From Octopus sinensis (lineage: Eukaryota), in the NCBI RefSeq assembly GCF_006345805.1, contig NC_043007.1:51832001-51896000 (forward strand): a stretch of 64,000 bases of DNA, in the 5' to 3' direction. The notes under the pieces are model-generated. The model made no database searches. It was given only the letters and a program-made list of their open reading frames with translations, and was not told where the DNA came from. A program made the position numbers and the translations under genes. This document shows, one piece after another, positions 6,508 to 62,601 of the stretch. Position 1 is the first letter of the stretch, and each line of letters starts with the position of its first letter.

Positions 6508-6956
6508 GGCGGCGAGCTGACAGAATCGTTAGCACGCCGGGCGAAATGCTTACCAGTATTACGTCTGCCGTTACGTTCTGAGTTCAAATTCTGCCAAGGT
6601 CGACTTTGCTTTTCATACTTTCAGAGTCGATTAAATAAGTGGCAGTAACGCATTGGGGTCGATGTAATCGACTTAATCCCTTTGTCTGTCCTTGTTTGTT
6701 CCCACTATGTTTAGCCCCCTGTGAGCAATAAAGAAATAAATATTTTAATCTAAAAAGGCGGCGAGCTGGCAGAAACGTTAGCACACCGGGCGAAATGCTT
6801 AGCGGTATTTCGTCTGACTTTACGTTCTGAGTTCAAATTTGTCGTTCATCCTTTCGGGGTCGATAAATTAAGTGCCATTTGCGTTCTGAGGTCGATCTAA
6901 TCGACGGGCCCCCTCCCCCAAAATGTCGAGCCTTGTGCCTAGAGTAGAAAAGAATA
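6508..6956 (+). mobile_element. Two tandem copies of SINE family B (6508-~6740, 6757-~6956)
   Basis: Both begin ggcggcgagctg(a/g)cagaa..gttagcac.ccgggcgaaatgctta and carry ttacgttctgagttcaaatt and ggggtcgat.taatcgac. Same family as 21732-22650. Confidence 0.85.
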
Positions 6957-8619: not shown

Positions 8620-9540
8620 CGCTTGATTTCTTCCTTCTCTTTTCTGGTAGCTTCGAAGTTTTTGATTTCGCTGATGATAGAACGCCGCCACTTGGTACGG
8701 TCTCAGGTTTGTGCTTCAAGCGACTGAGGCTCAATTCCAGTGGCTTTTAGTGTTGCTTTGAGTTGGTCCTTGTATCTTCGAAGAGGACAACCCGTGGCAT
8801 TCTTCCCGAAGTGAGATCACAGAATAAGACTTGGCATGAGAACCTTGACTCTTCCATTTTTGTTGCATGTCCTGACCATCGAAGACGGTGTTTCATGATC
8901 AGCGATTCGATACTTTGACTGTTAGCTTTTTCCAGGACTTTGTTGTTGATTTAATAGTGTTCCAATTTGATACTCAAGATTGAACGAAGCTTTTGTTGGT
9001 GAAAGTGGTCTAATTTTTGGATGTCATGACGATATAGAGCCATATAGCAAGGCTGAGATGACAACAGCATTATAAACCATAATTTTCGTTGTTTCTGTGT
9101 TGCTGATGATGCGTTTGGTTATCTTTCCAAATTCCCCGTGTACAACTCCAATTCTATGTTCCACATCCTTTTCTGAAGTGCACTTTTTTGGTAAAAGGCT
9201 GCTTAGATGTGGAAAACGCACTACTTTTTCGAGGAGTGTATTCGAGATGGTAACGTCAAAATCTGGTAAGATGGTATTTTGGGCTAGTTGTGCAAGGATC
9301 TTGGTTTTCTTTATTTTTCCTGTAAGGCCAAAGTGATGGTAAGCCATAGCAAAGTTGTTCACAGACTGTTGGAGTTCTTTTGAATGACAGAGGGCAGCAT
9401 TGTCATCAGCATAATAAAGTTCTGAGATGTGTTGCATGTGTGTTAGATGTTTAGATTGAAGTCTACTAAGATTGAAAAGTCCTCCATCATATCGATATCT
9501 GATGTCAATTCCTGGATTATCTGGAGGAACTTCGTTAAGT
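8620..9540 (-). pseudogene. RTE-clade LINE, RT C-terminal fragment
   Basis: ORF 9024-9545: GIDIRYRYDGGLFNLSRL...ELYYADD...LLYGS. Continues to RLRWSGH, a typical RTE 3' motif. Confidence 0.85.
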
Positions 9541-9870
9541 AGCATGGACCAGCGGTTAGAACGTCGGGCTCACAATCAAGGGGCAATGAATTCAATTCCT
9601 GGACCGGCCTATGTGTGTTATGTTCTTGAGCAAGACACTTTTATTACACGTTGTTCCAGTTCACTCAGCTGTAGAAATGAGTTACAACGTCACTAGTGCA
9701 AGCTGTATCGGCCTTTACATTTCGCTAGGATAACATTAGTGGAGTGGAGAGGGGAGGCTGGTAGGCATGGTTGACTGTTGGTCTTCCATCAACCGGACTT
9801 GTGCCTCGGAGAGGAGTTTTCTAGGTGCGATCCCATGGTCATTCATGACCGAAAGGGTCTTTACACTCTT
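9541..9870 (+). mobile_element. tRNA-headed SINE with CORE-like central domain (family C)
   Basis: Head ccagcggttagaacgtcgggctcacaatc...attcaattcctgg, then ttgagcaagacactt and cagctgtagaaatgag resembling the CORE-SINE block. Related minus-strand copies at ~37240-37400 and ~44180-44420. Confidence 0.7.
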
Positions 9871-12400: not shown

Positions 12401-15400
12401 GTCTTTTCTGAATAGATGTTTTTTCGGCTCTTTATATTTGTTCTTTGTTTTGTATTGAGGACTTTCGAGATAATTGTTGCTGAACGTAATAAATATATTT
12501 TCTACACTGCACCTACCCAGCGGTCAAGATCATATTCTTCTAGTTTTGTATTCCGAAACAATGGAATCCTTGCATATTCTACATTGAGCTCTTGAGCTCT
12601 TGATCGAGTTTACCCAAGGACTGGTCCCTGGTATAATTTGTGATTGTACCACCATCCCAGATACTGTGTACTAGAAATAACAGCCAAATATGCCTAGAAA
12701 ATCTACTATCAACACCACAGTTACCATCACTGTTGTCAGTAGCAACACTACTACCACTACACCATCATCACCACCACCATCATCCCCACAAGCAACAACA
12801 ACAGGAACACAACCTTACCACTACCGTCGCTGCTACTACCATCACTAGCGCCAACACTACCACTACTATCATCACCAACACTATTACCACCACCGCTATC
12901 AGCACCACTTCCACCACTACCATCACCACCCTCATGTCCACCACCATTACTGCTTCTACCACCATTATACCCACTATCATCATACCCAGCACCACCACCA
13001 TTTTGTCATTTAATACGAAAATTCAAATTCCAACGCAACGATACTGAATTCTTGATGTATAATTTTCTTGTCTAACACCAACAATCGCCGACCTTCTGGA
13101 ATAGTCTACACTTCCCCAAACCCCAACCCCAGCTTTGTTCTCTTGTCAAACACCCCTGCACCGTACACCATAAATATTTCACTTCCACCTCCGCACTAAG
13201 TCTAACCCTTCCACTCCTCCAGCCCTCCACTCGCTCCAAAACACCAGAGTAAACATGCAGAAAATGGTTTGAAATGTTAAGAGGTTCTAAGTACTTACAA
13301 GAGAATCTTATTAAAATGTTTGCTCGAGCTATCTAGCCGATGTCAAAGCATGACCGCACATACACCTCTAAACATGTACACACACACACAGACACACACG
13401 CGCGCATACACATGCACACATGTACACACATATACACACACACCACGCACACACACACACGTCTCACTCTGTTGCTACTAATCATCGTTATACGTTCTAC
13501 ACAGTAAATCGGAGGTAGATTTAAATAACTAATCGTACAAGATAGATGCTTTGAGTACAATTGTCGTGTCCCTTCATAAATCCAAATGAGCGCGCGCACA
13601 TATGCATATATATGCACACACATACGCATGCACACGCAAACACGCACATGCTTACACATATTATATTCAATATATTATGTTTAATTATACTTCAATTGCC
13701 TTAGTCTAATTTTCTATATACTCAAATGTCTTAATGTTATAGTAGCACTGTGATATATGCATATATAAATTAGCTCTATCATAGGATATTGAGTAATATC
13801 GTAACATTAACACTGAAGTATCAGTAAGATATAATATTGTATAGATTACAAGATTACAAGTTATATTAATTACCATTAATTACCATAGAAGCTAGATTTT
13901 TGATTAATTGGAATTTATTCCGAGATAGGGTGAATAAAATTATTCTTAATACATGGCAAAATGTGCGCCCCAGGGACTTCAATTCTGAAAATAATTTGAT
14001 TCTCCACTGTTAAAATAATATCAAAGGAACTTGGATCAAGATTATATAAGGATTAGAGTCGAGTTAAATTAGTGGATAATGTTTATATATGTAAGCAGTC
14101 CGTGTGTCTACGCCCACAAATCGATATTATTTTGGACGTCTATAAAGTCAGTAGTAGTTATGGCAATAGTGATGTTCCAGCTCATGCTCACGTGCATAAG
14201 TACGTTGGAAACCAGGTAGTACTAGACAGTTGTAGGAAAAGAAAAATGAAGTGTAATAATAGAAAAGAGGAAATAAAGAGAAAACTAGAAGTTGATCTTC
14301 GCAGGTTGGACTTTCCAATTGACCGCTGAGGACTTGTCTGTAAAAATTTCATTTTTAGAATTGAGACAGTTCTTAAGTTTGCTAGAATTTTCATCTCTGC
14401 TACACAAAACCTGCACGTTTTGGACCTTTGTTATAGTCAGTCTCATAATCTTCCAAAACCCACACATGACCTGCTAATATTGTAGATGTCTGCTTGCTTG
14501 GATATTTGAAAGTTGGTACATAGTTATAAAATCTAATGTAAAGGTCCTCAACCATGCCTATATAATGATAATGATAATGATAATGACAACGACGGCGACC
14601 ACGATGATGATGATGAAGACGACAATGACAACGACGACGACAACGAAAATGATGACGACAAAGACGATGATGATGATGATCGGCGACAACATCATCATCT
14701 TGGCAACCAACAACAATGCTCTCTCTTTTTTCAAAATAGCTTCTTTTCAGTTCATCTTTTCCCGCTCTTCAACCAGTAATACTTCCTCCACACCTACAGT
14801 CGACAAAGATGGCGATCTCCTATGGTTATATCAACAAGAAATTCCAGACGAAATGTTTTTCAAATTAAACCCATTGTCAGGGCTTTTTTGTTTATTTTTG
14901 TTTTTCTTTTATTTGTTTATTCATCTTGTTCATTTTTATCATACCCTTCTATCAACCCGATTATCTGCTAATCAGTTGATCCACCCTTCGACTCCTACAA
15001 AACTGCGATCTGTAATCTTTGTTTTATGTAGCTAATTAGAATTCAACTAAGCTAGGCATTGTCAGGATGTTCCCTCTCTCTTTCTCTCTCTTTCTTTCTC
15101 TCTCTCTCTCTATCTCTCTGTGTCTCTCTCTCACGTTCTCTCTTTCACTTTCTCTCTCTTTCTTTTTTCTAGCTTTTTCTCTTTCTTTTTCTCCTACTCC
15201 CTTTCTCTCTGCCCTTCATTATATCTATGTGTACATATATAGAGAAGTGGTAAATGTGTATATATGTGTGCGTATGCTGCGTGTCTGCGTGTGTCTATAG
15301 GTGGATATTCATTTTTATCTCGCAAGAACTACAGTATCTTCTACATATCTCCTTCGTTTCTAGACGTGTTGTTATAATCATTATTGGATATAACCTCCAC

Positions 15401-22650: not shown

Positions 22651-25289
22651 TTCGTAATGGTAATATCCGATAATATATACTCCTACATAATCGATTACCC
22701 GATAGCCACAACTTACACCTCTTATATTCTATTCAGTTATCACACATTAATATCATCAACCCACAGCGGACCCGATCAACAGTAAAACGCACAATCCTAA
22801 CTACACAATACATACGACATACAGACCCCATCCAGCCAAATAACACAACTCATACATCTTCCACACTAAAATATCACGACCACCAACAACAACAGCAGCA
22901 AATTCCACCCAAAACAAAACTTTTTGTAATATATAAACACATGCCAACATTTCCAGAAAACAATGCTGCACTACTTTTAGAATACCCGGTGGTGCAAGAG
23001 AGTTTTGCACAGAAACTGTTTAAAATATAAAACAACAACAATAATAACGCCGCCGCCGACGACGACGACGGCGGCGGCGGCGGCGGCGGTGGTGGTGGTG
23101 GTGTGGTGGTGGTGGTGGTGGTAGTGGTGGTGGTGGTGGTGGTGGTGGTGGTGGTGGTGGTGATACAATAACAACTTCATGTCAATGTTTGCTTGGTTGG
23201 TTCAAGAGAAGGAATGCGGAAGAGTTCAGACCTACCGCAGACCGAACATCATCATCGTCGTCGTCGTCCTCGTCGTCATCGCTTTCGTAGTCATCATTGT
23301 CATCATCGTAGTCGTCACGGCCGTCATTGTTGTCGTCGTCGTCGTTATTTCATGAAAGACAACTCGTTGTTCGTCCATTTATCAAATGCTGCCAGTCAGT
23401 TTCACTAAAGTACTACACACTGTTACGGGAATCTGGCTATCTTCAGATATTCAGGGTGTCAGGAAGATGGTAAGGGGTGGATACGGGAGTCTAGTACAGT
23501 TAAGGATGATGGGTGGGATGTTAGTTGTTGTGGTTACTGTGTATGTATATATATATATATAGGAGGGAGAGGGGGAGGGGGAGGAAGAGGAAGAGGAAAA
23601 TATTTGATAAGGAGTGGTAGTGAAAATAGAGAATATGCTAGAAGAGGATCTATATGGGAGAGATTGTGGGAGGTGAAATGACTGCGGTACAAAAAAGGCA
23701 ACTACGTAAAATTGCGGTGTTGTATAGGACGCTGAAATATTGGGTTCAGATTTTGGCACAAAGCCAGCAATTTCGAGGTAGGGGATAAGTTGATTGCATC
23801 GACCCCAGGGCTCGACTGGTACTTCAGTTCTATAATAATACTTCCAGCGGTCAAGGGAAATGCTACAGTGGTAATGGACAAGTCTGACTACTCGGAAAAA
23901 TTGGCAAGTCTTACAAGTGATGGTAGCTACAGCAAAGTAAAGAAAGACCCTTCTTTGAAAACAGAGAGGAAGTTGTCACAGATCTTGATTAAGAACAAGG
24001 ATCACTTTGCACCAATGAAATACAGGCAACTAACTCAACACTGCAGTAAACTACCACATATGTACGGTCTTCCTAAGATTCACAAGAATGGTATTCCATT
24101 AAGACCTATAGTGAGCTGTAGAGATTCAGCATGTCATCCACTGAGCCGCTTCCTTGTGGATATATTCAGTTCATTAGCAGGAAAGTCAACATCGTACGGG
24201 AAGAATTCCACTCACTTCTCAGAATTGATCAATGATGCCCTCATTAAATCCAACTAGATGGTAAGTCTAGATGTGATAAGTCTGTTCTCTGAAGTCTCAA
24301 CTGGTGAAGTACTATCGGTGATTCAAGAAAAGCTAGTGACAGACACCCATCTAAAAGAACGCACTAGTATAACAATAAGAAACTTAATGGAAATGTTGAC
24401 CTGTGTAGAAACTACCTACTTCAGTATGGACACTGATATATGTCGACAAGAAGAGGGTTTAGTAATGGGTTCACCATTATCACCGATAATAGTTAATATA
24501 TACATGGAATACTTTGAGAATTTGGCTTTAGGATCAATACCACTAAAACCAACACTGTGGCTGCGATATGTTGATGACACCTTTATACTCTGGCCCCACC
24601 AGGAAGATGTCCAAGTGCTGTTAGATCATGTGAACTCAATAAAGCCATCCATACAGTTCACAGTGGAAAAGGAGAAAGACAATCAGCTAGCATTCCTGGG
24701 CGTATTAATAACACGCACCGAGTATGGATTCAGGACATCCGTATACCGTAAGCCAACCTTCACTGGACCATACCTCAACTTCAATACCCACCATCCATAC
24801 AGTGTAAAGAGAGGGATTGCTCAGTGCCTAAAACATCGAGCAAAGAATATAAGTAGCTATCGCGATACCCACCACGAAGAAATGATCAAGCTCAGTAACA
24901 ATCTATTAAGCAACAACTACCCCCAAAACACACTATCCACTCCAATTATGAAGAAAAGAGAGGATGAAACCAATAAGCTGTCCACAGTCTGTCTACTCTA
25001 TGTGAAAGGCCTCTTTGAAAAGATATGCGACCCATATGACATCAGGATAGTATTCAAGGGTAATACAACACTTCGCAAATATCTCCGACGGCGGCGGTGG
25101 TGGTGGTGGTGGTGGTGGTGGTGATGATACAATAACAACTTCATGTCAATGTTTGCTTGGTTGGTTCATAGAAGAGAATATGACCAAAAACTGCGTGTAC
25201 TCCATCCCATGCAGCTGTGGTAGGTTATACAAAGGCGAAACATGTCACCCCCTCAAAATAAGGGTAGAGGAACATCGCAAAGCTGTGAC

Positions 25290-25565
25290 TGTGGTATGAC
25301 GTCAGCAGCTGGGGAGCTGACCGGAACTTGGGGCTGGCCAGAAGGAGCAGCAGTGACACGCGCGCAAGTAGGGTAGCATTCGGCCTTTCGATCGTGGTCG
25401 CCGAGCGAGTAAGACGAGTCAGCACGTTGTTAAGGTTGGGAGAAGCAGCTGCTATTTCTAGCGTTCGGGTCGGGCTGTGTTGAAGGATCCATTACCGCTG
25501 AAGGGCCTCCATCTGAGCGAAGAGAAGACAGGTGCCTTTATTTCGAATCTCTCGCATACACCACA
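25290..25565 (+). repeat. 5' LTR
   Basis: TG...CA termini. About 18 substitutions and no indels versus the 3' LTR (manual count). Confidence 0.95.
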
Positions 25566-25577
25566 AGCTATTTCGGC
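25566..25577 (+). promoter_or_regulatory. Putative primer-binding site complementary to nt 1-12 of tRNA-Phe(GAA)
   Basis: AGCTATTTCGGC directly after the 5' LTR is the reverse complement of GCCGAAATAGCT, the 5' end of metazoan cytosolic tRNA-Phe. No TGG-type PBS is present. Confidence 0.75.
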
Positions 25578-25600
25578 GCTCCGTATAAGACGTCACCACG

Positions 25601-26356
25601 ATGGCAGCGAAAATCAGGATCGCCAGCGACATCATCAGACCCTTTAATGGAGAAGGCGATGTAGTGGCCTGGATGCGTAAAATCAGGCTGGTGGCAAGAC
25701 TGCAAGGTATAAGCGATGTGGCAAGTCTTATGGCGCTGTATTTGGAAGGGAGCGCGTTGACGCTATATCTTGAGATGGACGAGGAAGAACGTCTGAACGA
25801 GGAAAAGATCGAGCAACGTCTGAGGGATACCTACACAGAGTGTGAGTACACAGCTTTTGCTAAGCTGGGTACGATCAGATGGATGGGAGGACAGGTGGAC
25901 GAATATGCAGCAGAAGTTCGAAGGTTAGCGACGCTGGCTGGGTTTACAGGAGAAGGGTTGGAGAGAGCAGCACGACTGGCGTTCGTAAATGGGTTCCCCG
26001 ACGATGTAGGGATTCACCTACAACAATTGGCCAGGAGTAAAAAGATGACGCTGAGCGAACTTGTGACTCAAGACCGCGTGTTGACGCGACACTCTGGGCG
26101 GAGGGCGATAGCGATGGCGGTGTGTAAAGACGGACGACGGCCAGAGAAAGACGTGCAGAAGCCTACCGTGCAACGACAGCGGCCATTCTCAGGTCGGTGT
26201 TTAAGATGTCAGGGGTCGCACATGGCGAGGGAGTGTACGCAACCGGGGCCCGTTTGCTATCGATGCAGGCAGACAAGGCACATCGCCCGTGATTGCGACC
26301 AGGGAAACGACCGCGGGGAAGTTGCTTCCTCTCGAACTTTCCCCGCAAACGAGTAG
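25601..26356 (+). CDS. gag: Gag-like protein, 251 aa, two CCHC zinc knuckles
   Basis: Intact ORF starting 35 nt after the 5' LTR. CLRCQGSHMAREC and CYRCRQTRHIARDC. Confidence 0.9.
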   Translation: MAAKIRIASDIIRPFNGEGDVVAWMRKIRLVARLQGISDVASLMALYLEGSALTLYLEMDEEERLNEEKIEQRLRDTYTECEYTAFAKLGTIRWMGGQVDEYAAEVRRLATLAGFTGEGLERAARLAFVNGFPDDVGIHLQQLARSKKMTLSELVTQDRVLTRHSGRRAIAMAVCKDGRRPEKDVQKPTVQRQRPFSGRCLRCQGSHMARECTQPGPVCYRCRQTRHIARDCDQGNDRGEVASSRTFPANE

Positions 26357-28955
26357 AGGCGCTTTTGGAGACGCTGCCATTAATTGACGTGGAGGCCGAA
26401 GGGGAAGACGTTCAAGGCCCTCGTGGATACGGGCTGCACGACTACCCTTGTGAATTCAAGGGTGTCGAAGAAATGGAAAGGGGCAAGTAGCGTCCGGGCG
26501 GTCGACGGCAGCGAAATCCGTTGCAAAGGCAGCAGCAAGGTAGAGATAGTGGTGCGCGCCGCAACGCTAAGGCTGCAGGTAATTGTGGCTGAACGCGTAA
26601 TAGATGGGGTTGATGTGGTGATGGGGATGGACGCCATCAACCGCCTCGGTAGCGTCAGTATTGTGGGATATGAGGTCACGTTCGGTAGCGTGGGGGCGAC
26701 GTGCACGGCGAGTCAGGATCGCCAGGGAGAGCAGAGCCCCGCGAGGGACTGCGCCGCTTACACCATCGAGGACAAAGATTTTCAGGCGGTGGACGATAGA
26801 GGGGCGATGAAAGGACAAAAACAGAGTGAGCTGCTACCAGCATACCCTGAAAGGCCACGCCAGGGTCGAGTTTGAAGACGAGGTGGAGAGGTGGATCGAG
26901 GAAGGGGTCCTTGTCCCTTGGAAGGAGGAGGTAGCGGGCGGAGTGCTACCCCTGATGGTGGTGGTGCAGCCTACGGAGGGAAAAGTCAGACCGGTGCTGG
27001 ACTTCAGGGAGCTAAACCAGCATATATCGTGTCACACGGGAGGTGAGGCGACGGACGTTTGTGGCGAGATGTTATGTGCGTGGAGACAGTCGACCAAGGC
27101 AGCGGAGATTGTCGAATTGAAATCGGCATACTTGCAGCTCCATGTGAGCGACAAACTGTGGGGATATCAGCTGGTGCGGTACAAGGGCCGGACGTACTGT
27201 CTAACCAGGCTGGGTTTCGGGCTGAATTCCGCTCCGAAGATCATGGCGGCAGTGCTTAGGTCCGTCCTAGGGAAAGACGGCAAGATTAGAAAGGCCACCA
27301 GCTCCTACATTGACGACATTTTGGTGGACGAAACTGTAGTGCCAGCCAACGAGGTAGTTAGACATCTGGAGAAGTTCGGACTGATTGCGAAATCACCGGA
27401 GACGATGGAAGGGGGAGCCGCACTGGGGCTGAAGCTGCGAAGAGATAGATCGGGTGAGTTGGTGTTCCTGAGAGGGAATGAAATCCCAGAGCTGAGTTCC
27501 GGCGTCAGCAGGAGAGAGCTGAAGACCCGGAAGACCCGGTCAGAGGGAACTGGTACGTGCCCAAGACGGAATGCGGGACCGTCTGGTGTGATGCTAGCAG
27601 TATAGCGATAGGGATTGTGTTGGCGATCGAAGTCGCTGCGGTGGAGGACGCGGCCTGGCTTCGGAAAGCAGATGACTTCAACCACATCAATGTCGCCGAA
27701 TTAGACGCGGTGCTGAAAGGGGTGAACTTGGCTCTGAAATGGGGGCAATTGAAATCCGGACGGATTCGGCCACTTTGCTTGGCTGGGTAGGATCGGTGAT
27801 CACCGGTGAAAGGAGAGTTCGGACGAAAGGTGCCGCGGAGATGTTGGCGAAGCACCGTCTAGGAGTTCTAGGAGAATTGATTGCCGAGTTTGGACTGAAG
27901 CTGAACGTGGTTTTCGAGCCTTCGGAGAAAAACAGGGCGGACGCACTGACCAGGGTGAAAAGGGCGTGGTTGGAGGAACCGGAGGAGGCCCGGAAAGGGA
28001 TAGCTGCAGCGTGTCGGTTGGATGACTCTAAACTGAAGAGACTGCATGCTATGCATCACTTGGGTGTGGACAGGACCCTGTATCTGGCGAAGAAAATTGA
28101 TACTGACGTCACCAGGAGAAGCATCCGGAAAGTGGTCGGGAGCTGCGACAGGTGTCAGTCCGTTGACCCTGCTCCGTGTGGGCATGAACAGGGAAACCTT
28201 TCGGTGGAGCACAACTGGAAAAGGCTAGCTTTTCCCCGTCAGAGAATGTATCTCTCCATGGTCGACTGCGGGCCGAGCCGGGTCGGCTGGCCATTTGGAG
28301 GGAGTTGAAAACGAGCATTGCTGACGAGATTGCGCAGATCTTGAACGGGATATTTTTAGAGAGAGGTCCCGTGAAAGAACTGCTAATGGACAACGGGGCG
28401 GTGTTTCGTTCGGAAGCATTGAGGGATATGCTTGACCGGTGGAAGGTGCGTCGCTTGTTCAGAGCAGCGTATAGGCCGAGCGGTAACGGGATCGTAGAGA
28501 GGCACCATCGGACACTCAAGGCCATAGCGGAAAGAGGGCACATTTCGCCGTTTGAAGCAGTTTTTTGGTACAACTTGCCTCCCTGATCCGGACAAGCTGA
28601 AGAATCTGTGCCGCAGAGAGCTGTATTTAAATATGAATGGAGGTACCCGAGTAAAGCGCCGGAGGGCTACGAGGAATAGAAGGGACCCTCTTGCGTGAAA
28701 ATAGGGGAGGAAGTCTGGGTTAAGCCACCGAAGGCGCGCTGTACGTCTCAATGGAGCAGAGGAACGGTGACGGCGGTCAATTCCAGAAACAACGTCTCCG
28801 TGGATGGAATGCCGCGACACGTCTTAGACCTTCGCAGGATTGTTGCTTCGACGGAGGACGATTGTGGAGAGGGGGAGAACGAGGTACCTAGCTTGAGAAG
28901 ATCTCGACGCGCAAGGCGCCCTCCCGGTTGGATGGTGGACTACGACATGGAGTAG
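26302..28955 (+). pseudogene. pol: Pol (aspartic protease, RT, RNase H, integrase) broken by frameshifts
   Basis: PR: ALVDTG. RT: KVRPVLDFRELN...LKSAYLQ...RLGFGLNSAP...YIDD. RNase H: WCDAS...HINVAELDA...IRTDS...NRADALTR. IN: HAMHHLG...CDRC, MVD, LMDNG, NGIVERHHRTLK. Confidence 0.9.
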
Positions 28956-28986
28956 AGAGATTGTGATCTTTAAGATCAGGGTGGCG

Positions 28987-29262
28987 TGTGGTATAACGTC
29001 AGCAGCTGGGGAGCTGACCGGGACTTGGGGCTGACCGGAAGGAGCAGCAGTGATGCGTGCGCAGGTAAGGTAGCATTCGGCCTTTCGATCGTGGTCGCCG
29101 AGCGAGTAAGACGGGTCAGCACGTTGTTAAGTTTGGGAGAAGCAGCAGCTATTTCTAGCGTTCAGGTCGGGCTGTGTTGAAGGATCCATTACCGCTGAAG
29201 GGTCTCCATCTGAGCGAAGAGAAGGTAGGTGCCTTTATTTCGAATCTCTCACAGACACCACA
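28987..29262 (+). repeat. 3' LTR, preceded by a G-rich PPT-like tract (agatcagggtggcg)
   Basis: Colinear with the 5' LTR and followed by TSD GTGAC. Confidence 0.95.
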
Positions 29263-29651
29263 GTGACACGAGGAGATATTGATAAATCGGATATAGCTAA
29301 TCGTGTATAGAAAAATGGAGATCACCTCCCCCTGTGGGATGAAGTTAAAATAATAGACAGAGAACACCACTGGAAAATACGAAAACTAAATGAAACAGCA
29401 CATATGGTAGGACACAACACTCTCTTAAGCAGACCGAATGCAGATATGAATAGCATATGGGAACCGGTATTAAAGAAGGACAGGAAAATATTAGACTCAT
29501 AAGCCCTAAAATATACTTCCTAATTGCTCACGGGCATATGGCGTAGTGGTTAAGAGCGCGAGCTGCTTACCCCAATAATAATAATAATAACAACGACAAC
29601 AACATCGAAAAATACCTTAGGAATGAGAATCCAGGTTCGAAATTTCCCGAA

Positions 29652-35519: not shown

Positions 35520-36110
35520 CCAAGAAGACGTAGGCAGAGAAAACTTTTATGGTAAGATCCCCCATATAGTATGAATGCTACCACTAACACAACAAGAAAA
35601 TTCCTAAAACTCATGTATAACCAATTCCCTCACATAAATTTCATAAGATCTTCAACAGAAATACGGTTAAAGTTAGCTATTATAGCCTCCCTGATATAAG
35701 GTCAATAATTTTCAATCACAATAAAAATAACAACATTAGGAACATCCTCCAAAGATCTTGTAACTGCATATCTCTGGACACCTTTCTCTTGAGCCAATAA
35801 GCGCCAGGAAAAATAATTAGCGTGCAAGCATTACGGATTTGAACGGAACAACAAGAACTTATATTTGAATGACGGGAAACACCTTCTAAGAGCGATATAC
35901 GCCACATTTGGCTTCGTTCAGAAATAAAAACAAAGAACACCCAACATCTTTATCCAGTATGTTATAGACACTTAAAAAGAGAGCCTTAATGCTAAAGCTA
36001 GCGAATACAGAGGACGGGGCAGCAAATGCGAGTTCTGCATAGCTGAAAAACTAAACGTTATAACATCAACAGTGAACTTTTTATACAATGGAGAGGAAAC
36101 CTTCTTCCCC
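35520..36110 (+). pseudogene. Penelope-like linker and GIY-YIG relic
   Basis: RQRKLLW*DPPYSMN...KFHKIFNRNTVKVSY...TYI*MTGNTF*ERY..H..SFRNK...KASEYRGRGSKCEFCIAEKL. Confidence 0.8.
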
Positions 36111-36572
36111 TGCATACTCAATCAACACCTCATAATTCGAACTTTGAAGCAAGATCTTTATCCAGTATGTTATAGACACTTAAAAAGAGAGCCTTAATGC
36201 TAAAGCTAGCGAATACAGAGGACGGGGCAGCAAATGCGAGTTCTGCATAGCTGAAAAACTAAACGTTATAACATCAACAGTGAACTTTTTATACAATGGA
36301 GAGGAAACCTTCTTCCCCTGCATACTCAATCAACACCTCATAATTCGAACTTTGAAGCAAGATCTTTATCCAGTATGTTATAGACACTTAAAAAGAGAGC
36401 CTTAATGCTAAAGCTAGCGAATACAGAGGACGGGGCAGCAAATGCGAGTTCTGCATAGCTGAAAAACTAAACGTTATAACATCAACAGTGAACTTTTTAT
36501 ACAATGGAGAGGAAACCTTCTTCCCCTGCATACTCAATCAACACCTCATAATTCGAACTTTGAAGCAAGATC
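35946..36572. repeat. Tandem triplication of a 208-bp unit
   Basis: Units start at 35946, 36154 and 36362. No differences seen by eye. ATC microhomology at the junctions. Confidence 0.95.
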
Positions 36573-56413: not shown

Positions 56414-57105
<692 letters not shown>

Positions 57106-62395: not shown

Positions 62396-62601
62396 AACTA
62401 AAAATAAGGGTGTCTGAGAGACACCACCATGCCGAAATAGCAGTCAAATCCCTGACTCTAAAAACCACGTTAAATGTTCATATCGCACCATGAGATAAGA
62501 ACATTTAACGTGCGATATGAACATTAACGTGATTTTTAGAGTCAGGGATTTGACTGCTATTTCGGCGTGGTGGTGTCTCTCAGACACCCTTATTTTTAGT
62601 T
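62396..62601. repeat. Fold-back element (~92-bp arms, 21-bp spacer)
   Basis: Arms at 62396-62488 and 62510-62601, next to (TA)n. Confidence 0.9.

Follow-up and report, generated by a model that had tools for sequence, protein, structure and literature searches.

A candidate minus-strand primer-binding site complementary to the 5' end of tRNA-Phe in a retrovirus-like lineage of LTR retroelements

A 64,000-nucleotide stretch of the Octopus sinensis genome (contig NC_043007.1, positions 51,832,001 to 51,896,000; here called the window) carries a degenerate, frameshifted 3.97-kb gag-pol retroelement with long terminal repeats (LTRs) at 25290-29262. The 12 bases that directly follow the U5 end of its 5' LTR, AGCTATTTCGGC at 25566-25577, are the reverse complement of GCCGAAATAGCT, which is the start of tRNA-Phe(GAA), and the match extends over 12 of 12 positions (tRNA nt 1 to 12). 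On balance, the sequence evidence favored the interpretation that these bases form the minus-strand primer-binding site (PBS) and that a 5' 12-mer of tRNA-Phe, severed from the rest of the molecule after nt 12, would act as the primer. The parts of this interpretation differ in strength. The 5' end of tRNA-Phe is very probably the functional partner of the site and the primer is probably a 12-nt 5' fragment of this tRNA; release of the fragment by the element's own RNase H, which is proposed by analogy with Tf1, is plausible but somewhat doubtful. Three modes of priming are taught for LTR retroelements, namely, priming by the 3' end of an intact tRNA, priming by a tRNA half cut in the anticodon loop, and self-priming. 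What is proposed here is a variant of tRNA-dependent priming in which the site corresponds to the 5' end of the tRNA instead of the 3' end.

The edge of the 5' LTR at 25565 was fixed independently of any idea about priming, because the element is defined by its target-site duplication, its LTRs, its polypurine tract and its coding region for Gag, protease, reverse transcriptase (RT) and integrase (Table 1). It thus has the general features of an LTR retrotransposon, with LTRs bounded by TG...CA (TGTGG at the start and CCACA at the end), a target-site duplication, gag and pol domains and a polypurine tract. The 5' LTR ends in ...ATACACCACA / ...ACACCACA, and the 12-mer begins at the next base without a spacer. 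An earlier reading of the window, made from the sequence alone, had placed the LTR end and the 12-mer at these same coordinates, had noted the lack of a TGG (anti-CCA) site and had equated the reverse complement of the 12-mer with the first bases of tRNA-Phe(GAA) from human and Drosophila, and all of these statements were borne out. No TGG was detected in the 35 nt 3' of the 5' LTR. A search across the whole element for a canonical site matching the 3' end of tRNA-Phe, which the same reading had named as a possible better match, returned a best match of 12/18 that lay inside pol. The tRNA start is present in a published forward primer for human Phe(GAA), GCCGAAATAGCTCAGTTGGGAG (PMC10505166), and in a published Drosophila "tRNA Phe GAA 5' probe," GCTCTCCCAACTGAGCTATTTCGGC (PMC7038984). 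Analysis with ARAGORN identified tRNA-Phe(GAA) genes starting with GCCGAAATAGCT in four loci, where they lay within eukaryote-type tRNA clusters. The part of the tRNA that would be paired covers the acceptor-stem 5' strand and continues through U8, A9, G10, C11 and U12, and the 12-bp RNA duplex between PBS and tRNA had a predicted energy of -18.7 to -22.7 kcal/mol.

Relatives were collected by a search with the RT open reading frame (ORF) of the window (E <= 1e-5), which yielded about 200 homologues at 40 to 70% identity; the named sources were Argonauta hians, Oratosquilla oratoria, Palaemon carinicauda, Plakobranchus ocellatus and Trichuris species. A total of 87 related loci were analyzed, of which 9 were genomic (found via proteins) and 78 were from metagenomes (found via RT alignment). 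The harvest of candidate sites was designed not to depend on the expected motif: the gag N terminus was located by profile in these loci and the upstream DNA was then listed. An LTR end in (T/C)A followed immediately by AGCTA-NNNN-GGC was found 0 to 60 nt 5' of the gag ATG in 45 of the 87 loci. For the relatives with a usable 5' end (about 50), the layout recovered was an LTR ending in ACA, directly joined to AGCTA-NNNN-GGC, ahead of gag. Three loci were only apparent exceptions, as their PBS lies at a greater distance from gag: in L011 it is AGCTATTTCGGC, 240 nt upstream of gag, and in L013 and L017 it is AGCTATCCCGGC. The 240-nt leader between site and gag in L011 (400-600) was seen to be built of a duplicated block of ~120 nt. 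Truncation at the 5' end or interruption of the copies in L003 (Oratosquilla), L008 and L009 (both Trichuris) left no site, and these loci were rejected as sources.

The boundaries of the conserved block were sharp. In all elements for which both LTRs were available (the window copy, L001, L002, L029 and L044), the motif began at the first base 3' of the LTR. Among 41 nonidentical sequence contexts, the LTR-terminal ACA and PBS positions 1 to 6 and 10 to 12 each had an information content of ~2 bits, whereas positions 7 to 9 were intermediate and background was reached from position 13 onwards. Conservation therefore ends at base 12, and the block runs from U5 to the base that would face nt 1 of the tRNA. 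Retention in relatives of the 12-mer after the 5' LTR had been put forward in the sequence-only reading as a check on its proposal, as had covariation of the site with tRNA 5' ends, and both were observed, with the site at zero distance from the LTR.

Variation within the PBS was confined to the bases opposite tRNA nt 4 to 7, in the acceptor stem, and fell into discrete classes (Table 2). Pattern scans for tRNA-Phe-like genes were performed on environmental DNA. Five of the seven primer classes (GCC-GAAA/TAGA/GCGA/GTGA/GGAA-TAGCT) were identical to the opening 12 nt of tRNA-Phe(GAA) genes whose bodies are of eukaryotic type. The contigs bearing these genes contained eukaryote-style tRNA arrays with A34 anticodons (for example, Ala-AGC, Arg-ACG and Leu-AAG) misbinned into bacterial metagenome-assembled genomes (MAGs), apart from L121, which is an IMG/VR contig. 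On a neighbor-joining tree of RT sequences, the PBS classes were not monophyletic: GAAA occurred in at least three clades, L037 (GAAA) was sister to L042 (GCGA), and L001 (TAGA) lay inside a GAAA clade. This repeated switching among tRNA-Phe starts fits a site that is matched to, or copied from, a host molecule.

Table 2. Primer 12-mers implied by the sites of the relatives and tRNA-Phe(GAA) genes found for the primer classes
Item	Loci
Primer 12-mer GCCTAGATAGCT	14 loci
Primer 12-mer GCCGAAATAGCT (GAAA class)	9 loci + L004, L011
Primer 12-mer GCCGCGATAGCT	9 loci
Primer 12-mer GCCGTGATAGCT	3-5 loci
Primer 12-mer GCCGGAATAGCT	L006
Primer 12-mer GCCGTGTTAGCT	L025
Primer 12-mer GCCGGGATAGCT	L013, L017
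GAAA-class tRNA-Phe(GAA) genes	L154, L171, L172, L233
GGAA-class tRNA-Phe(GAA) genes	L136, L142
GCGA-class tRNA-Phe(GAA) gene	L137
GTGA-class tRNA-Phe(GAA) genes	L161, L167
TAGA-class tRNA-Phe(GAA) gene	L121 (IMG/VR contig)

Eukaryote-type tRNA gene arrays were seen in several contigs with bacterial labels: CBDDFR010000002.1 (L137/L143/L184; labeled as a Gracilimonas MAG), CBDDBN010000030.1 (L172; labeled as a Denitrobaculum MAG, 1.37 Mb) and scaffolds of Streptomyces sp. E11-3 (L135/L177). One example among such contigs is a 3.7-kb tandem unit with Phe, Gly, Gln, His, Val, Pro and Met tRNAs. These contigs look like host or contaminant eukaryotic DNA that was binned into bacterial assemblies.

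Comparison with known systems showed both likenesses and differences. Canonical elements primed by tRNA 3' ends also use a host tRNA and have their site directly after U5, but these sites begin with TGG and pair with the last 8 to 18 nt of the tRNA, including CCA, whereas the site described here faces the opposite end of the molecule. Assignment to this canonical class was rejected on the lack of TGG and on the 12/18 match to the tRNA-Phe 3' end. In copia and Ty5, the pairing partner is an internal stretch of initiator tRNA-Met whose end lies in the anticodon loop, and the primer is ~39 nt long. Unlike the sites of copia, Ty5 and the hemiviruses, the present site pairs with tRNA-Phe nt 1 to 12, would call for a cut in the D stem and would leave the whole primer paired; the half-tRNA class was rejected because the pairing is with tRNA-Phe nt 1 to 12 and not with internal tRNA-Met. 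Copia-type elements do show that a piece derived from the 5' part of a tRNA can prime (PMC8515867), and tRNA-Phe is used as a primer by mouse IAP/IAPE-type elements (PMC7472051). A short site (11 nt in Tf1 and 12 nt here) with zero spacing to U5 is shared with Tf1, Tf2, Tj1 and sushi. As in Tf1, the primer would be the extreme 5' end of an RNA, with pairing that stops at the first nucleotide of that RNA, and, by analogy, would need endonucleolytic release where the RNA:RNA duplex ends. The RNase H of Tf1 is described as freeing the 11-nt primer by a cut at the edge of an RNA:RNA duplex (Levin 1996, cited in PMC4600332), and the Tf1-type PBS is described as pairing with the beginning of the transcript of the element itself, a stretch within the LTR (PMC4600332). 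The partner here differs from that of Tf1 in being a host tRNA that would act in trans.

The following sequence of events is envisaged. The zinc-knuckle Gag would open tRNA-Phe, whose 5' end would anneal to the PBS, and cleavage of the tRNA, most likely by the element RNase H, would then separate U12 from C13 where the 12-bp RNA:RNA duplex ends. The primer must end at tRNA nt 12, because its 3'-OH must face the first PBS base, which pairs with U12, and it is restricted to nt 1 to 12 because the LTR-terminal ACA is unable to pair with C13, A14 and G15. The 12-mer would be extended through U5 and R, and plus-strand strong-stop synthesis would later copy the entire 12-mer and so regenerate a PBS identical to the host tRNA. 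Such rewriting of the site from its primer would explain its exact length, its preservation beside an unconserved leader and the switching of class on a change of host. Priming by a 5' fragment, as proposed in the sequence-only reading, was favored by every sequence-level test that was run. The sequences establish how the element is built, the complementarity of its PBS to the tRNA, conservation over exactly 12 nt, covariation with variants of tRNA-Phe and the lack of a self-primer; the annealing, the position of the cut at 12/13, the nuclease and the actual use of the primer are inferred. Whether this amounts to a fourth mode of LTR-element priming, in which a widespread retrovirus-like lineage uses an RNase H-cut tRNA-Phe 12-mer and a PBS that is rewritten in each cycle and thereby adapts automatically to the host tRNA-Phe, is a question that we regard as almost evenly balanced, with a slight leaning against.

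As the main alternative, the 12-mer could be made in advance by a host nuclease, as a very short 5' tRNA fragment that is packaged or annealed ready for use, with no part in its making for the element RNase H. This explanation accounts equally well for all of the sequence evidence, and sequence alone fails to separate it from cleavage by the element RNase H. A class of host-made 5' tRNA fragments does exist, and the half-tRNA primer of copia is generally held to be host derived. The known 5' fragments, however, end in the D loop or later (at least 14 nt), and longer fragments would leave 3' bases unpaired against the LTR-terminal ACA, so that trimming would still be required. We know of no documented 12-nt tRNA-fragment species, and manufacture of the primer by the host was considered unlikely. 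Self-priming of the Tf1/sushi type, in which the 5' end of the element's own transcript would fold onto the PBS and be cut by RNase H and the resemblance to tRNA-Phe would be secondary, is suggested by the short PBS, the zero spacing to U5 and the sharp downstream boundary, as described for Tf1 and Tj1 (PMC4600332). A complement of the PBS at the transcript 5' end or in the LTR, which the sequence-only reading had recognized as a threat to its proposal, was found at chance level only. Within the LTRs of the window copy, L001, L002 and L004, complements reached at best 7 to 8 Watson-Crick pairs of 12, and 39 of 40 elements were at shuffle level (7 to 9 of 12 at best) when the 400 nt preceding the site were scanned. 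A scan of the sense strand of 42 elements, 158 kb in total, detected a single complement of at least 11/12 against 0.35 expected; it lay in L050, with 11/12 matches, 327 nt upstream of the site of that element, and was not a tRNA. Since no complement beyond chance was present in LTRs or elements, Tf1-type self-priming was unsupported. The LTRs of different relatives are, moreover, unrelated in sequence and yet the PBS is constant, and its variants track tRNA-Phe genes, all of which makes self-priming extremely improbable.

A different host small RNA ending in ...GCCNNNNUAGCU, such as a truncated RNA polymerase III transcript or a tRNA-like RNA, might also serve as the primer. TAGCT is the start of the polymerase III box A, which is common to many small RNAs, and a GCC....TAGCT start is shared by other tRNAs. 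In animals, however, the exact 12-mer is the start of tRNA-Phe, the five matched classes all correspond to tRNA-Phe(GAA) genes, the downstream conservation boundary falls at tRNA nt 1, and we know of no candidate RNA; another small RNA was thus judged very unlikely. Comparably low probability was assigned to the proposal that the 12-mer is a docking site for intact tRNA-Phe or a cis-acting signal for packaging or translation and that DNA synthesis begins in some other way. A position immediately 3' of U5 defines the minus-strand primer site, a matching polypurine tract adjoins the 3' LTR, no alternative primer site was found, and conservation is confined to exactly the bases that would be paired. 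In principle, one 12-mer in a 64-kb window could arise randomly in a single decayed copy. Only 0.07 near-matches were expected in the window, and the presence of the site in the same place in ~50 independent elements from different hosts refuted a chance resemblance, the probability of which is negligible. The sequence-only reading had argued against chance from a figure of 4^-12, and its conclusion stands, less by virtue of that figure than through this recurrence.

Several observations weigh against priming by a tRNA-Phe 5' 12-mer. To our knowledge, neither a D-stem cut between nt 12 and 13 nor tRNA fragments of 12 nt are a recognized class, and known tRNA 5' fragments measure at least 14 nt. 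The anchoring pattern brought a degree of ascertainment bias to PBS positions 1 to 5 and 10 to 12, but the raw upstream listing gave the same picture. Two sites were 13 nt long owing to an extra base in the middle: AGCTAATTTCGGC in L002 (5910-5922; Argonauta hians) and AGCTATCATCGGC in L056. The LTRs of L002 are 97.7% identical, so that this copy is not very old. In L070 (~470-482) and L075 (~2020-2032), which represent the same element in two samples, CA is followed by CGCTATCTGTGC in place of AGCTA....GGC. A scan of viral contigs with the primer implied by this site, GCACAGATAGCG, gave many matches, none of them in a tRNA, and the site may belong to a decayed copy or may reflect a different primer. 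The matched tRNA-Phe genes and the elements come from separate loci, with no host pairing among them, and no tRNA genes were found in the window or in the 87 related loci. Phage and bacterial tRNAs for Thr, Ile and Lys may share GCC....TAGCT starts, so that for the non-GAAA classes identity with tRNA-Phe is likely rather than certain. Scans for the GGGA and GTGT classes gave only phage-type tRNAs of mixed identity.

Should priming indeed start at the 5' end of tRNA-Phe, the three modes that are taught would be joined by a fourth, used by a conserved and apparently active lineage that turns to the opposite end of the tRNA. Duplex cutting by RNase H in the style of Tf1 would then be linked with tRNA priming, which bears on the evolution of self-priming. 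A 12-nt RNA, GCC....UAGCU, would be expected at the 5' end of strong-stop cDNA, together with a cut by RT-RNase H at 12/13. Expectations for defence by tRNA fragments would change as well: these elements would escape the 3' fragments that act by blocking canonical sites, whereas 5' fragments of tRNA-Phe could serve as primers or competitors. Annotation tools for LTR elements that are keyed to tRNA 3' ends will call such elements PBS-less. A full-text literature search, which included literal 12-mers and outside which lay older subscription papers and Repbase Reports, detected no description of a PBS complementary to a tRNA 5' end.

The lineage that carries the site is itself poorly described. 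Its hosts include molluscs, crustaceans and nematodes, as well as eukaryotes known from metagenomes, and no relatives of the element were present in a search of IMG/VR. In intact relatives, Gag measures ~280 aa and Pol ~1000 aa, the latter with the order protease - RT - DUF7047 - RNase H (RVT_3/RNase_H type) - integrase, and the elements are compact, at about 4 to 4.8 kb. Their LTRs range from 170 to 840 bp and are 97 to 99% identical, and the PBS is retained in these intact copies; the high LTR identity indicates that some members look recently active. The polypurine tract is kept in relatives as AGATCAGGGG(G/T)G(A/C)G. With the window RT and an RT profile as queries against solved structures, only retroviral RTs stood at the top of the matches (foamy virus, HIV-2, HIV-1 and MLV). 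RNase H was detected only in intact relatives and was of the cellular/retroviral type.

A gag-pol organization without env, an RT of retroviral type and an RNase_H/RVT_3 RNase H located after a linker domain are shared with Odin, the lokiretroviruses and Retroviridae. Odin elements are marked by an RT that groups with the lokiretroviruses and by a dual RNase H (a tether and an acquired RNase H). The linker here is a 61-aa DUF7047, at most a putative tether, and the RT is only 25% identical to that of Odin over 138 aa. Odin has been reported from sea anemones only (PMC9040795), in contrast to the molluscs, crustaceans, nematodes and metagenome eukaryotes of the present lineage, and membership in Odin was not demonstrable from these sequences. 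The sequence-only reading had mentioned the Troyka group as an example of a divergent lineage for which such priming might already be described. This aside was wrong: Troyka (Kuafuorterviruses) has CG...CG termini and 3-bp duplications (PMC12440569), against TG...CA and 5 bp here, and membership was rejected on both characters. The papers on Odin, the Kuafuorterviruses and Troyka contain no mention of primer sites.

Two structural peculiarities of relatives were also recorded. In L012, L013, L015, L019, L027, L036 and other metagenome contigs, the last 99 to 140 nt repeat the start of the same contig at 97 to 100% identity, which gives "circles" of 3.7 to 4.6 kb with one LTR and the internal part. 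Either multicopy elements were collapsed in assembly, or active reverse transcription gave rise to real circles with one LTR. The relative in L003 (Oratosquilla oratoria) is interrupted by copies (6641-6903, 9397-9865 and 12600-12848) of a ~260-bp repeat resembling a miniature inverted-repeat transposable element (MITE), with the inverted ends TTAACCC...GGGTTAA.

Table 1. Features of the Octopus sinensis element in window coordinates
Feature	Position	Strand	Remarks
Target-site duplication, left copy GTGAC	25285..25289	+	Identical 5 bases at 29263-29267; joining of the flanks restores an ORF
5' LTR, TGTGG...CCACA	25290..25565	+	93.5% identity to 28987-29262 over 276 nt
Candidate primer-binding site AGCTATTTCGGC	25566..25577	+	Pairs with tRNA-Phe(GAA) nt 1-12 (GCCGAAAUAGCU)
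Short untranslated leader, PBS to gag ATG	25578..25600	+	Unconserved in relatives
gag ORF, 251 aa, two CCHC zinc knuckles	25601..26356	+	Matches gag profile made from relatives
Retropepsin (aspartyl protease) ORF fragment	26384..26875	+	gag-asp_proteas, Asp_protease_2 and RVP matches
Reverse transcriptase ORF, retrovirus-like	26826..27605	+	Motifs VRPVLDFRELN, LGFGLNSAP, YIDD
Region of DUF7047 + RNase H (RVT_3/RNase_H type) of relatives	27606..28035	+	Degenerate in window copy, without domain match
Integrase, two frames	27739..28586	+	H2C2 zinc-binding ORF 27739-28308; rve core ORF 28305-28586
Polypurine-tract-like plus-strand primer site AAGATCAGGGTGGCG	28972..28986	+	Adjoins 3' LTR
3' LTR, 276 bp	28987..29262	+	Direct repeat of 5' LTR (276 bp)
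Target-site duplication, right copy GTGAC	29263..29267	+	Identical to 25285-25289

The copy in the window is old and broken, with 6.5% divergence between its LTRs, frameshifts and an undetectable RNase H. Neither a second copy of the family nor a solo LTR was found within the 64 kb, and a scan of 25200-25800 against Rfam matched no family. Inclusive of the PBS, the window contains four matches to the PBS 12-mer with at most one mismatch, against 0.07 expected. Near-copies were seen in two palindromic (foldback/MITE-like) repeats: in that at 62398-62600, GCCGAAATAGCA is present in both arms (62431-62442 on the forward strand and 62555-62566 on the reverse strand), and in that at 56620-56990, AGCTGTTTCGGC lies at the center (56800-56811). 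These may be a coincidence or may belong to another tRNA-Phe-related repeat. The LTRs themselves contain AGCTATTTC, the first 9 (8) bases of the PBS in the same sense, at 29147-29155 in the 3' LTR and at ~25451-25458 in the 5' LTR; this partial copy was dropped as a meaningful feature, as such copies are at chance level in relatives, and is probably coincidental.

When the flanks of the element (25140-25289 and 29268-29310) were joined with one GTGAC removed, an ORF was restored that reads ...NCVYSIPCSCGRLYKGETCHPLKIRVEEHRKAVTRGDIDKSDIANRV* and includes a GIY-YIG-like motif such as Penelope-like elements carry. This restoration indicated that the insertion of the element had taken place within an older repeat. 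Immediately 5' of the joined ORF, at ~25090-25127, there is a (GGT)n run, and three head-to-tail copies of a 208-bp unit, 100% identical to each other, were observed at 35942-36572.

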